A stretch of DNA of 64,000 nt from Octopus sinensis (lineage: Eukaryota): contig NC_043012.1 in NCBI RefSeq assembly GCF_006345805.1, forward strand, positions 14,570,001-14,634,000, in the 5' to 3' direction. This document shows, one piece after another, positions 40,917 through 61,822 of this stretch. The translations under genes and the position numbers were made by a program. Under the pieces are notes generated by a model. The model searched no databases and was not told the origin of the DNA. It saw nothing but the letters and a program-made list of their open reading frames with translations. Numbering within the stretch: position 1 is the stretch's first letter; the number at the start of each line of letters is the position of its first letter.

Positions 40917-41198
40917 GTGAGATAAAAGTTGCCGATGATTTGACCAGAGAACCACAGAAACGTTTGTATGAGTTAAATATCAAAGCTATAGATTTTGGCT
41001 ATCCCTCTTTATCATCGAGCACAATTGTAAAAATTGAGGTGCCAATAAATAAACCAGTCACCATTGCACCCAACAATATTTTTCATGTCTCGGAAGGTGT
41101 TAAAATTGGGACCAAAGTTGGCTCAGTAAATGCAACAGATCCGGACGGAGCGTTAGGAAGTAACCAGACGTTATGGTACATCCTCATTGACAAAGATG
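40917..41198 (+). CDS. Cadherin exon A (282 nt, phase 1/1): second half of one EC repeat plus first half of the next
   Basis: tttcag|GT acceptor and G|gtgagt donor. Encodes GEIKVADDLTRE...AIDFGYPSLSS...PINKP...VSEG...ATDPD...LWYI, typical cadherin repeat motifs. Confidence 0.93.
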
Positions 41199-41944
41199 GT
41201 GAGTGTAATTTTTCCATTAAGATTCATAACACTGTTAATACCATTGACATAAACTTGAGATAAACGCTTCTTCATGTATCAGAACATAAATGGAATCCAT
41301 TTTTATATCAGAGGGTTCAAAGACGTAATTGTAAATTTCTTACTAAGAACCAACATGAAGGTCAAACAACAAAGTAAATTCTTCGACACAGTCACTCGAC
41401 TTACTCAAAAGAGCAGCCAAAGTGTTTCGCAAAAAACACTCATAGCATCTTTAAAGTGTTAAGACTGAACTAATAAAATTACTTCTGCGTCGTCATTAAC
41501 CCATCTCGTAAATTCGGATCAGTAAATTCCTTATCTTAGAATAGGGGTCGGCTGTTTCAAACTTTAAATCTTAAGATAGTAGATAATATAGCTCAGATTA
41601 TAAGAAAACATGGCCACAGCAAGAGTAATAATTCTCCAATCTGTTATGTTTATCTAACTCCGGTTCCTACTCTGCAATTTACAAATGGCAAATAACCAAT
41701 TGTTGTAAAAAGAATGTTATTCTGTAATTGAATGACTTTGCTTCCATAATGGTATTGCTGGTTTTATTGCATAAACACAGTCTGGTGGCCAGGAAAAAGA
41801 GAAGATAAAACATTTTAGACTATGAATAAAAAGAATAAAAGTAAACAAAAAAAAATCAATATGAATACCAGACCATGGTCCGTTGTTATACAGATTAAAT
41901 AATATCCTGTTCATATATATGGAAGAATAAACGAAGGAAAGAAA

Positions 41945-42215
41945 GAAAGAATGAGAGAAAGAAAGAAAGAAAGAAAGAAAGAAAGAAAGAAAGAAAGAAA
42001 GAAAGAAAGAAAGAAAGAAAGAAAGAAAGAGAGGAACGGAGGAAAGAAGGAAGAGAGGAACGGAGGGAGGGAGGGAGGCAGAAAGAAAGAAAGAAAGAAA
42101 GAAAGGAAGGAAGGAAGGAAGGAAGGAAGGAAGGAAGGAAGGAAGGAAAGAAGGAAGGAAGGAACAAATAACCAAACAAAAGAAAGAAAGAAAGAAAGAA
42201 AGAAAGAAAAGTAGT
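41945..42215. repeat. (GAAA)n/(GGAA)n tetranucleotide tract
   Basis: Read directly from the sequence. Confidence 0.95.
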
Positions 42216-42937
42216 TGTGTTGACAGACAGAACATTATAATTGCAGGTTGAACGCTAACGTCAATGAAATCAACAAATGAGATACAGTAATGTGTGCGTG
42301 TGAGTGCATGTGCGTGTGTGTGCGTGTGTGTGTGTGTGGTCTGGTGCGGTGTGGTGTGGTGTAATGTGGTCATGAGTGCATGCATGGATATATACGTGAA
42401 CAGATCCAGCAGTTGTCATTATAAGTTGTCATTATCGCTGACGATCAGACAGCATCGTTACCGCGCCTGACAAAATATTTAGAAGCGTTTCTTCTGACTC
42501 TCTACGTTTTGAGTTCAAACATCGCCGTGTTTGACTTTGCCTTCATATAAACACTCAACTGACCCAAGATCAAGTGTAAGAGGACACTGTATTGCAGAGA
42601 GAGAAAGAAAGACAGAGAGAAACCGGCCAATAATGTTTGGCGCAGCTGCAGGGGATCTTGGACAATCGACCCAAACTTTGACTGAAATTAAGCAGATGGA
42701 AAATATACGAAAGTTCATCGGGTGGATTAGACTTGTTACTGGATTGGAAGGCTTAATCCGTTGCCCAGTTTGACTAACCACTTGCATACCGTGAACGGAG
42801 CCCACTCTGTGGCAAGCATCTCCACTAAGTCTCTGACCTGAAAATAATCTAAAAGATGTGATGGTTTCTTCTTCCCTAAGATAGGGGAAAGATGGTCATG
42901 GGAACCGCTATTTCTCATCCGACAAACTCAAAATATA

Positions 42938-43355
42938 CGAAGGGATTCTGGAAAGTTCCTGGCTTCGCGAAAGGCCTGGTTGGGGGCCCAAACTTCCGAG
43001 TTCTTTTACAGGGCGTAAAAAACTGAAGGGCAGTTGCAATAAGTGTGTGAATCTGGCAGGGGAATATATTGGATAGAATCATAATTAATTGGTACTCCTG
43101 TATTTTCTTTTACCCAAAACCAGGAAGATTCTAGCACCTCCTCGTTTATATATACATGAGAGGGTGCTGAAAAGTTCTTGGCTTTAAGGGTATCGCAAAA
43201 GGCCTGGTTGAAGGCCCAACCCTCCGAGTTCTTTTACAGGGCTTACAAAAACTGAAGGACCGCTGCAAAAAGTGTGTGAATCTGAGAGGGGGAAATATGT
43301 TGGATGAAATCATAATTAACTGATCCTCCTGTATTTTCTTTTACTAAATCCAAGA
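42938..43355 (+). mobile_element. Two tandem mariner-derived MITEs of about 210 bp (third copy at 47208-47425)
   Basis: TIR like CGAGGGGTGCTGAAAAGTTCCTGGCTTT, TA-flanked. The interior resembles the transposase C-terminus (WLEAQPSEFF...KCVNLRGEYVE). Confidence 0.8.
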
Positions 43356-43667
43356 ACTATATATAGTTCTTGGATTTATATAGCACCCATTTGGATTTAT
43401 ATAGCATCCGCTATATACCGTATACGTTGACTCGCTATATAATTGTTGTTATTGCAATAGTCAGCTCTGCAGTATGAAGCCTATTGTTTCACAGCGTCAT
43501 ACTGTGTGTAATCTATTGATTGCTAGGACATCGTCTGTGCAGTGAGAAATTTCACCTTTAAACCAAGTCATATATTCTAAACTTGATTATTTTACCTGGT
43601 GTAAGACAAGCTTTTTCAGCTAAATTCTCTGATGATGATTTCTTTCAGTTCTTAAATTTTCTTTCAG

Positions 43668-59200: not shown

Positions 59201-59494
59201 CATAGATCTTTTGTTCAAACCATCACGTGTTTCAGTATATAGTTAATCGTAGACCTGTCTCAGTTGACTTAGCCACCGGTAGAAATACAATCATATCGTT
59301 TAATATGGATACCTATGCTAGACAGATAACATCACAATCAGTACAAAATTTATTTCTTACCAGCTTAATTCTTAAAATTTGGCACTAAACATCAACCTCT
59401 TAAAATGAAAAGTGAAACTCCCATAGAATTAAAAGGAAGTTTTTAGAAATCTGCGCATATTTTTATGTCATCAATTTAATTTTTATATTTTCAG

Positions 59495-59668
59495 AATCAG
59501 GAAATCATTGCAACTGATGCAGATGCTGAGGAATATAACAGAGATATTGTCTACAACTTATCGGGAGCAGGTGCTCAACTGTTCGCCCTTAACGTTCTAG
59601 AAGGTACAATCCGTGTGAAAAATCCTGTTAACATTCGCTGTGATGTTGTAGACACATATGACTTGAAG
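59495..59668 (+). CDS. Cadherin exon G (174 nt, phase 0/0); paralogous to exon C
   Basis: tttcag| acceptor and AAG|gtaggt donor. Encodes NQEIIATDAD...IVYNLSG...LFAL...GTIRV...YDLK. Confidence 0.9.
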
Positions 59669-60598
59669 GTAGGTGTGCATTACTTTGATTGGATTTGGTT
59701 TTATTATCTTCATTATTTATCGGGAGAAATTTTACTAAAGAATTTCCTTGTCAAAATTTGCAAGGTCATAAATGTTTTCTCCTCTTTTTTTGCATAAATC
59801 CAAGTCCGATAGCTAATGGAGATAAGATCGGACAATTGTAGAGCTGACAACGGCGACAGAGCCAGAAATACGTGTCAACAGTTGTTCTCATATCTCCAAA
59901 CAGTAAGCCTGGCCTTGTATGTCAGCTTTGGAGAACACATGATTGTGATTATCTCCCCTTCTCAAGTGGACCTTGTCATAATCACTATTTGGTAATTATG
60001 ATACAACCTCTTGAGGTGAAGATAACTCCAATAAGTCAAGAATTTGTTGTATATTATTTGACGTACTTGTATTTGTCTCTGTTATTTAGATACATGCCTC
60101 TGGCCATGGGGAGTAATTTCTCAATTCACTTCTGTTTACTTTATGAGATTGTTGTACACACACCTTTTGACATCTGATATCTGTCGCTATTGTTTTGAAA
60201 AGCCAGAGTCAAGTTGCCTTCCTCTCAGTTTCAGTCGCTCGCTCTTCTTCGTTTCTCTTCTACTTCTACAAATACAATTACCCCATTCAGCTAAGACTGA
60301 CAATCTATTTCCTCTCTTCCAGTTGTTTATCTGTCTTCTCATTCCATTTAATCAGTGCCGAAACGCTGTTCAAGCATTCGCATAACCAGCACCGACCCCT
60401 TTCTCTCTCTCTCTCTCTCTCCTTCTCGCTTTCACTCTCTCCCTCTCTCTCCTCTCTTTCTATCTCTTTCTCTCCTTCTCTCAATACCATCTTCATTTCG
60501 TCATCTACACACAACACGTGCACAAACATGAACATAACCAATTTTACATTGTATGATTTCAATGTCTTTCTCTCTTGCTCTCTCTCGCTCTCTACAAG

Positions 60599-60851
60599 GT
60601 TATTGCCACTGACCAAGGAGGTGCTGGCCATAAAACCGAAACCAGTCTTAGAATTGTCATCGAGGATATAAATGACAATGCTCCAATATTTAAAAAGCAG
60701 TATAAATTTAAAACTCCAATGACAGCAAAAGTAGGAACAAAAGTTGGTTCCGTTAGTGCCATCGACTCAGATTGCAGTCTTCAGAATAACCGAATTACAT
60801 ATTTGCTCAAAGATGGAGGTTTTGGCAAGTTCAAGATCGACCCAGACAAAG
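60599..60851 (+). CDS. Cadherin exon H (253 nt, phase 0/1); paralogous to exon D
   Basis: Long pyrimidine tract with tacaag| acceptor, and G|gtaatt donor. Encodes VIATDQGG...EDINDNAPIF...AIDSD...GKFKIDPDK. Confidence 0.92.
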
Positions 60852-61540
60852 GTAATTTTTATTCTATATTTCGTGTTGCTTTTGTTACAGTTAGGGAGGG
60901 TCATTCAGCCAATAGTAAACACACACACTGGTTTTATTTCTTTTCTTTCATTGTTACTAGTCAGTTGAAGGCAACGAGCTGGCAGTATCGTTAGCACGCT
61001 GGACAAAATGTTTGGCGGCATTTCATCCGTCTTTGCGTTCCGAGTTCAAATTCCAGCGAGTTTGACTTTGCCTTTCATCCTCTCGGGTTCTATGAAATAA
61101 GTACCTGTCAAATCCTGGGGCCGACTTAACCTCTCTCTCGAACTTGCTGCCTTATGCCAATAGTAGAAAAGATTATTATTTGTCAACTATAAGGCAGCGA
61201 GATGGCAGTATCGTTAGCACGCTGGACGAAATGCTTAGCGGTATTTCATCTGTCGCTACGTTCTGAGTTCAAATTCCGCCGAAGTCCATTATGCCTTTTA
61301 TCTTTTCGGGGTCGATTAATAAGTACCAGTTACGTACTGGGGTCGATTCTTTCAGTTTCCGTCTACCAAATCCACTCACAAAGCTTTGTTCGGCCCGAGG
61401 CTATAGTAGAAGGCACTTGCCCAAGGTGTCACGCAGTGGGACTGAACCCGGAACCATGTGGTTCGTAAGCAAGCTACTTACCACATAGCCACTCCTAAAT
61501 TATTATTTATTATTGATTTATCGAAATATTTGTTTTTCAG

Positions 61541-61822
61541 GTGATATAACCGTTGCTGACAATCTTGTTCGAGAACCAGTTGAAACACAGTATAATATTG
61601 TGGTACAAGCTATAGATAATGGAGCGCCAGGTCTTTCCAGTAGTACAAATATCTCTGTATTTGTTCCGATCAATCACCCACCCACTATAAAACGAAGTTT
61701 TTACTTCTATGTATTAGAAAACAACAAAGCTGGTATATTTATAGGGAACGTAGTCGCAGATGATCCTGATTTACGCAAAGTAAAAGGGGAGAAGCTAACA
61801 TTTTTCATCACAGATAAATCAG
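61541..61822 (+). CDS. Cadherin exon I (282 nt, phase 1/1); paralogous to exons A and E
   Basis: tttcag| acceptor and G|gtgaga donor. Encodes GDITVADNLVRE...AIDNGAPGLSS...PINHPP...VLEN...ADDPD. Confidence 0.94.

Follow-up and report, generated by a model that had tools for sequence, protein, structure and literature searches.

A cadherin gene with a three-domain period

The stretch of DNA analysed here, hereafter the window, comprises 64,000 nucleotides of the Octopus sinensis genome (NCBI RefSeq assembly GCF_006345805.1, contig NC_043012.1, positions 14,570,001 to 14,634,000 of the forward strand; positions below are counted from its first letter). It holds the middle part of a large mollusc cadherin-repeat gene, in which every third junction between extracellular cadherin (EC) domains departs from the canonical calcium-binding design. 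Ten exons on the plus strand, named A to J and spanning 40917-63515, have AG/GT borders throughout and are spliced into one open frame of 812 amino acids. The Pfam Cadherin model (PF00028) matches this spliced model in eight stretches (E 2e-108), placing it in the cadherin superfamily with its EC domains in tandem. The exon lengths recur in sets of four (282/248/174/244, 282/242/174/253 and 282/254 bp), and the best paralogues of each exon are those at the corresponding position (A/E/I, B/F/J, C/G and D/H). One module consists of four exons encoding three EC domains, which we named X (103 aa), Y (104-105 aa) and Z (109-114 aa); its length, 948 or 951 bp, is divisible by three, and it is entered and left in phase 1. 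The domain order in the window is X(partial)-Y-Z-X-Y-Z-X-Y-Z(partial), and the paralogous modules are mutually 31-45% identical.

The eight linkers read, in order, EVPINKP, DVNDN, DINDN, LVTLNKPP, DINDN, DINDN, FVPINHPP and DINDN. All three altered linkers join an X to a Y domain on the plus strand: EVPINKP in exon A (41036-41056), LVTLNKPP in exon E (51316-51339) and FVPINHPP in exon I (61660-61683). An initial annotation of this DNA had reported odd linkers at every third junction with the other five reading DVNDN or DINDN, and we find them at the same places in the open spliced frame. Its further remark that the domains before the odd linkers lack two other calcium ligands was likewise borne out. 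The A-strand Glu is missing in the X domains begun by exon D (YQVGPL, 47048-47065) and exon H (FKTPMT, 60707-60724), and the Asp of LDRE is missing in exon A (DLTRE, 40937-40951), exon E (NLTDN, 51217-51231) and exon I (NLVRE, 61561-61575).

In canonical cadherins the XEX Glu, the Asp and Glu of DRE and both Asp of DxNDN belong to calcium sites 1 and 2, and site 3 draws its side-chain ligands from the Asn of the linker and from DxD and xDx in the next domain. What is kept at the X-to-Y junctions is the linker Asn and the DxD of the Y domain (ATDPD, VTDPD and ADDPD), together with the xDx Asp of the Y domain in VFDSD and VKDNG, VINIG being the exception. The X-to-Y linker is also two residues shorter than a canonical one, the distance between the xDx Asp and its final Pro being 22 and not 24 residues, and the alignment gaps agree with this count. 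The canonical calcium motifs (XEX, DRE, DxNDN, DxD and xDx) are found at five of the eight window junctions, in one of them with DRE changed to RCD. The latter belongs to the window's second Z domain (exon G, 59630-59644), where NIRCD has Arg at the Asp position and one Cys only, and the orthologue is alike (IRCN); the family consensus for Z-type domains has D-C-E-x-x-C-x-Y, a motif with two Cys, where LDRE would stand. Judged by these residues, one junction that we class as canonical may also bind fewer ions. If three odd linkers were placed among eight by chance, an exact period of three would arise in 2 of 56 arrangements. The period exists because a four-exon, three-domain module was duplicated in tandem, so that one altered junction was copied rather than lost three times independently.

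Exon A (40917-41198, 282 bp, phase 1 in and out) encodes the C-terminal half of an X-type EC, the linker EVPINKP and the N-terminal half of a Y-type EC, and is 67% identical to its cephalopod orthologue (P0001, described below). Exon B (43668-43915) holds the remainder of this Y-type EC, a canonical DVNDN (43817-43840) and the start of a Z-type EC, the middle of which lies in exon C (44970-45143, 174 bp; AEDKD and FDAE) and the end in exon D (46949-47192), followed there by a canonical DINDN (47000-47032) and the first half of an X-type EC without the A-strand Glu. The second module continues with exon E (51197-51478, 282 bp, the paralogue of A), where NLTDN and LVTLNKPP precede the start of a Y-type EC with VKE and VTDPD, and with exon F (54052-54293, the paralogue of B), which carries LDRE, VINIG and a canonical DINDN (54201-54224). 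Exon G (59495-59668, 174 bp, the paralogue of C) encodes the Z-type EC with NIRCD at the LDRE position, and exon H (60599-60851, the paralogue of D) a canonical DINDN (60662-60685) and the start of an X-type EC that again lacks the A-strand Glu. In exon I (61541-61822, 282 bp, the paralogue of A and E) NLVRE and FVPINHPP are followed by the start of a Y-type EC with VLE and ADDPD, and exon J (63262-63515, the paralogue of B and F) carries IDRE, VKDNG, a canonical DINDN (63411-63434) and the start of the next Z-type EC.

After exon J the gene extends past the window, the orthologue running about 400 residues further. Upstream, a tblastn search of positions 1-40800 with the window exons and the orthologue's N-terminal 1083 residues found no cadherin exon. 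Given that exon A starts in mid-domain, the intron preceding it must be at least 40 kb long, or the assembly is discontinuous there. A decaying pseudogene, which we also considered, is ruled out by the open frames, the canonical splice sites and the transcribed orthologue.

Relatives and conservation of the altered junctions

The only close relative in the protein collection, P0001, is 61% identical over 99% of the spliced model. It is encoded on a 7.4-kb cephalopod transcript contig (L001, run SRR27666075), which reads as a signal peptide, about ten ECs, one frame break and then 11 more ECs. The transcript is collinear with exons A-J and has NVPVNKP, RVALNKAP and TVPVNHPP as its odd linkers; two further ones are found one module upstream (TTVNQQP) and one module downstream (the variant NAPHMVYNDHAP). 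At 3540-3570 of the same transcript the end of a J-type exon (..KQKVNL) is fused to the start of an A-type exon (GEITV..), with C- and D-type exons skipped and the frame shifted; this join may reflect repeats that were wrongly assembled, skipping of exons, or a collapse of modules of unknown number.

More distant members of the family were recovered with an exhaustive HMMER search from Lottia gigantea (LOTGIDRAFT_229554, 3166 aa), Haliotis asinina, H. rubra, Patella vulgata and the brachiopod Lingula anatina, those of Haliotis, Patella and Lingula carrying the label 'protocadherin Fat 4(-like)'. Linker strings across the family are repeats of one altered and two canonical linkers (xCC), with up to seven modules in a row in Lottia, as called by a crude classifier that over-calls non-canonical linkers (37% overall). 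Scored against the cephalopod X-Y profile, the X-Y pairs of the family reach 131-217 bits, mostly above other cadherins (maximum 137). In a neighbour-joining tree of the modules, drawn without support values, the window's third module (..NHPP) groups with the ..NHPP modules of Patella and H. rubra, which suggests that module duplication predates the divergence of cephalopods from gastropods.

We counted conservation in 25 X-Y pairs, drawn from six sources among cephalopods and gastropods. The XEX Glu is present in the X domain of a single pair and the LDRE Asp in none (T, L, V or M stand there instead), and a full DxNDN is likewise found at 0/25 junctions, so that the refutation which the initial annotation had named beforehand, orthologues restoring DxNDN at random, is not borne out. 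G, P or N stands in place of the A-strand Glu, and Pro and K, H or Q in place of the two DxNDN Asp. The linker itself follows a conserved replacement motif, V-P-x-N-x-x-P, in which V is kept in 22, P in 18, N in 22 and the final P in 23 of the 25 pairs. Pro follows the former XEX in 15 pairs and the former DRE in 20, and the DRE Glu position is occupied by Glu in 12 and by Asp in three. Atop the Y domain, the first Asp of DxD is kept in 21/25 pairs and the second in 19/25, and at least three of the four site-3 ligands are present at 22 of the 25 junctions. At the canonical junctions of the same sequences the same motifs are found in 24-25 of 25 cases, and the site-3 ligands are conserved at 96-100% versus 60-88% at X-to-Y. 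These counts mean that the X-to-Y junction is a conserved alternative design and not the product of decay, and that its site-3 ligands are under real but weaker constraint. The statement that every third junction has lost its calcium-binding motifs is therefore right for the ligands of sites 1 and 2 and wrong for those of site 3, where at least three of four side chains usually persist. In Lingula, outside the 25-pair set, the single repeat-region junction that we examined reads IDPSLTKPIPL, unlike the motif.

We also considered a compensating salt bridge between a kept DRE Glu and a Lys or His at the former Asp position, and rejected it since the two show no association (11/5/4/5). Two other giant cadherins, P0122 (ENA, 5532 aa) and P0236, are built of period-4 modules in which two of the four linkers are mild variants (NVNDN, DENEF). 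Being mild variants and not losses, they were set aside as further cases of periodic odd linkers. Periodic linker variation via module duplication seems to be common in giant cadherins.

The ends of the protein lie outside the window and were read from the orthologues. Members of the family have N-terminal signal peptides, followed by about eight non-repeated N-terminal ECs common to the members, in which the motif LEANDYPP is present in both the cephalopod transcript and Lottia. A hydrophobicity scan of six members, with a weak positive control, found no membrane-spanning segment beyond the signal peptides, one borderline stretch lying over a Lottia linker. Pfam returned cadherin-type matches only for the orthologue transcript, and no EGF or laminin-G domains. 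Just past the last EC, the cephalopod proteins, including A0A0L8GQ41 of Octopus bimaculoides, have the Cys tail CCRVPC, directly followed by TGA TAA both in the transcript (L001 7200-7230) and in an independent genomic contig (L002, about 10525-10545). Three other gene models or fragments (among P0279-P0282) end in ..NSTC, ..NNSC and ..DTC. The family looks like a secreted multi-EC protein, and its C-terminal Cys motif may be a disulfide-linking tail. The EGF and LamG domains, transmembrane helix and cytoplasmic tail of Fat or Fat4-like proteins were not found in the orthologues, the window being without the gene's 3' end. On this domain evidence the 'Fat 4-like' names are only automatic labels, and they give these mollusc proteins no functional assignment. 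We found no paper on the Lottia protein or its family.

Calcium occupancy and mechanics of the X-to-Y junction

The sequence anatomy of the X-to-Y junctions, their periodicity and their conservation are direct observations, against which known non-canonical linkers can be set. Compared with the structures in the Protein Data Bank (PDB), the X-Y profile matches best at CELSR1 EC5-6 (8vy2 451-652, 7sz8 134-335) and, within PCDH15, at EC5-6 (5w1d 121-323, 6bxu 15-217), in an unbroken alignment. When 60 residues around the linker were used as the query against solved chains, none had the same short linker, and all alignments needed gaps. In PCDH15 EC5-6 the XEX is modified, DRE is absent and PPNNQ stands for DxNDN, while the site-3 motifs are kept; this linker binds one Ca2+ at site 3, has been seen in three different orientations and is flexible (PMC7547225). 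In CELSR1 CADH5-6, studied by molecular dynamics (MD) and atomic force microscopy, two of three Ca2+ ions are lost and the junction acts as a hinge in MD, sampling 100-180 degrees (PMC12038025).

The X-to-Y junction resembles PCDH15 EC5-6 in its modified XEX, its lack of DRE, its Pro/Asn stretch (PPNNQ versus VPINKP) and the DxD and xDx kept on the next repeat. It differs in that the mollusc linker is two residues shorter than canonical, and in that PCDH15 has a single such site in a membrane-anchored tip-link protein, whereas here it recurs at every third junction of an apparently secreted one. CELSR1 CADH5-6 is the best profile match among all solved structures and, with the loss of two of its three calcium ions, is also similar to X-to-Y. 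Unlike the mollusc family, however, CELSR1 keeps the XEX Glu and has lost other positions (K533, T564), has one such site, and is a seven-transmembrane adhesion G-protein-coupled receptor with EGF and LamG domains. In PCDH15 EC9-10, DN-cadherin EC2-3 and LI-cadherin EC2-3 the canonical linker motifs are lost between otherwise normal ECs, as at X-to-Y, but there the ligands of all three sites are missing and the junctions are strongly bent. The 7D-cadherins have an odd linker between duplicated EC modules. The giant cadherins Fat and Dachsous have many ECs, and their several non-canonical linkers are believed to make them bend on themselves (Tsukasaki et al., 2014, cited in PMC12038025); in the mollusc family, by contrast, odd linkers come at a strict period, all with a single conserved motif. 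An octopus cadherin of more than 70 EC domains has also been reported.

A fully Ca2+-free linker is one from which the ligands of all three sites are gone, and the X-to-Y junctions do not belong to this class. Their sequence places them in the partial class, in which the ligands of sites 1 and 2 are lost and the site-3 motifs of the following repeat remain. The motif pattern is of the same kind as in PCDH15 EC5-6 and CELSR1 CADH5-6, and thus X-to-Y is probably a partial linker with one calcium at site 3, likely more bendable than its neighbours. It recurs periodically in a lophotrochozoan protein family that is uncharacterised.

We modelled the window's X-Y pair with AlphaFold2 from a 24-row alignment (one row from L001 was left out), with no ions and no dynamics. 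The model has a predicted local distance difference test (pLDDT) score of 91.5 and a predicted template modelling (pTM) score of 0.73, with the linker blocks at pLDDT 94-95; a canonical Y-Z pair modelled by the same method as a control has 92.7 and 0.65. Both consist of two all-beta domains with pLDDT 91-93, and against the PDB Foldseek matched them exclusively to pairs of cadherin ECs. In these models, then, the X-to-Y junction is predicted at least as confidently as a canonical one. The best Foldseek match of the X-Y model is CDH23 EC12-13 (PDB 5vh2; template modelling (TM) score 0.62-0.66, root-mean-square deviation (rmsd) 4.3-4.6 Å), the nearest solved two-domain geometry and yet only 27% identical. 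Ordinary straight pairs match at TM 0.50-0.58 and rmsd 6-7 Å, and the L-shaped PCDH15 EC9-10 at TM 0.46 and rmsd 14 Å. The canonical Y-Z control, however, matches canonical crystal pairs at TM 0.46-0.52, no better than X-Y does. Such gaps in TM are therefore weak evidence, and the fold comparison cannot separate a straight from a mildly bent junction. We kept as geometry evidence only the poor fit of the X-Y model to PCDH15 EC9-10. The 'regular kinks' of the initial annotation are not supported by the X-Y model, which leaves room for a rigid junction.

In the reading that we favour, the gene encodes a tandem array of X-Y-Z modules, duplicated before cephalopods and gastropods split, with ordinary cadherin linkers for three calcium ions at Y-to-Z and Z-to-X. 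X-to-Y has other residues in place of the acidic ligands of sites 1 and 2 and a shortened linker, and mostly keeps the site-3 ligands. The chain would then consist of three-domain rods, Y-Z-X, each of them stiff and connected to the next through a one-calcium junction less resistant to bending than canonical ones, with regularly spaced compliance or preferred bending points as the result. By analogy with the two closest described linkers, hinge behaviour at X-to-Y is the most likely consequence, and one that we consider reasonably probable. As suggested by the orthologues, the whole chain would run from a signal peptide through about eight non-repeated N-terminal ECs and the modules, with no membrane anchor, to a C-terminal Cys motif that possibly links chains by disulfides.

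Several points weigh against this reading. The site-3 ligands are less conserved at X-to-Y than at canonical junctions, so that some junctions may bind no calcium, and VINIG is without the xDx Asp. The linker position of the conserved Asn depends on where the two-residue gap is placed. AlphaFold2 gave a higher pTM to X-Y than to the canonical pair, and this high pTM together with a conserved, Pro-rich short linker could mean a fixed, rigid junction, while Foldseek left the geometry unsettled given how poorly the canonical control matched the crystal pairs. Finally, the secreted nature of the protein rests on orthologues, some of them incomplete gene models, because the window holds neither end of the gene.

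Alternatively, the short V-P-x-N-x-x-P linker could be rigid and calcium-independent, with a fixed geometry that would turn or shift the chain by the same amount after every third domain, or would create a periodic side-by-side docking surface. Such a design would fit the conservation of the replacement motif and of the Pro residues after the former XEX and DRE, the two missing residues, the high linker pLDDT, the pTM exceeding that of the canonical control, and CDH23 EC12-13 as best structural match. However, AlphaFold2 confidence is no measure of stiffness and ignores calcium, and the linkers of CELSR1 5-6 and PCDH15 5-6 are flexible. We regard a rigid junction as unlikely, yet as a serious competitor to the hinge.

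A junction that binds no calcium at all, and acts as a free or sharply kinked hinge like those of PCDH15 EC9-10 and DN-cadherin EC2-3, would fold the chain into a zig-zag, spring or helix. The initial annotation had drawn this likeness, which does not hold well: the site-3 motifs persist, and the one-calcium type fits better. In its favour, the acidic ligands of sites 1 and 2 are all gone in 24-25 of the 25 junctions, the ligands of site 3 are incompletely conserved (in the window, VINIG has no xDx Asp), and Ca2+-free linkers are bent in solved structures (PMC7547225). Nonetheless, the DxD, the xDx and the linker Asn are mostly kept, the kept pattern is one that binds a single Ca2+ at site 3 in PCDH15 EC5-6 (PMC7547225), and the AlphaFold2 model lies much further from PCDH15 EC9-10 than from straight pairs. 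For these reasons we find a calcium-free hinge improbable. Least credible of all is a neutral relic without mechanical role, in which one ancestral linker decayed and was copied by module duplication: tandem duplication would directly give the periodicity, and a regain of several acidic ligands is unlikely anyway, but the linker is not degenerate, its motif being kept across modules only 31-45% identical in cephalopods and gastropods.

Non-canonical cadherin linkers have so far been known as single cases, and each is believed to adjust how a long ectodomain is shaped or how elastic it is. In the present family one altered junction recurs five to eight times at a constant interval, conserved over some half a billion years in a protein that is unstudied. 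With modules that can be counted, swapped and 'repaired', the array lends itself to testing how the calcium bound at each junction determines the shape and stiffness of a chain of ECs. Animal cadherins rarely lack a membrane anchor, as this family appears to, which hints at a structural role outside the cell. Extending the favoured reading further, and with considerable doubt, the family might be an undescribed secreted, non-membrane cadherin of molluscs and brachiopods, whose periodic one-calcium junctions would form a superhelix, a zig-zag or a calcium-tunable spring, and whose C-terminal Cys would join chains into dimers or polymers, serving as a matrix or link filament and not as an adhesion receptor.

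Sequence surrounding the exons

The window is AT-rich, with 32-46% G+C, and contains many microsatellites and a short interspersed repeat, a composition typical of an animal genome and, to judge from the closest relatives, of a cephalopod one. A trinucleotide microsatellite lies at 45150-45467, just past the exon C donor; read in frame it gives poly-Asp/Gly/Val, and it is outside the spliced model. A fragment of an open reading frame (ORF) at 53283-53590 (..LPHSPYSPDIAPLDFHLFRSLQNSF..) had no Pfam match at E ≤0.01; it resembles a mariner-type transposase in its C-terminal part. An interspersed repeat of about 150 bp occurs at more than 30 sites in the introns and upstream (for example 9512-9663, 16063-16219, 49249-49407, 61150-61520 and 62721-62876), on both strands, with 71-92% identity among its copies and the look of a short interspersed element (SINE). 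The intron between exons F and G contains a purine-rich, low-complexity block of about 1.8 kb (54461-56282) with long spurious ORFs on both strands, and positions 54001-56000 have a GC skew of 0.54 and an AT skew of 0.62.

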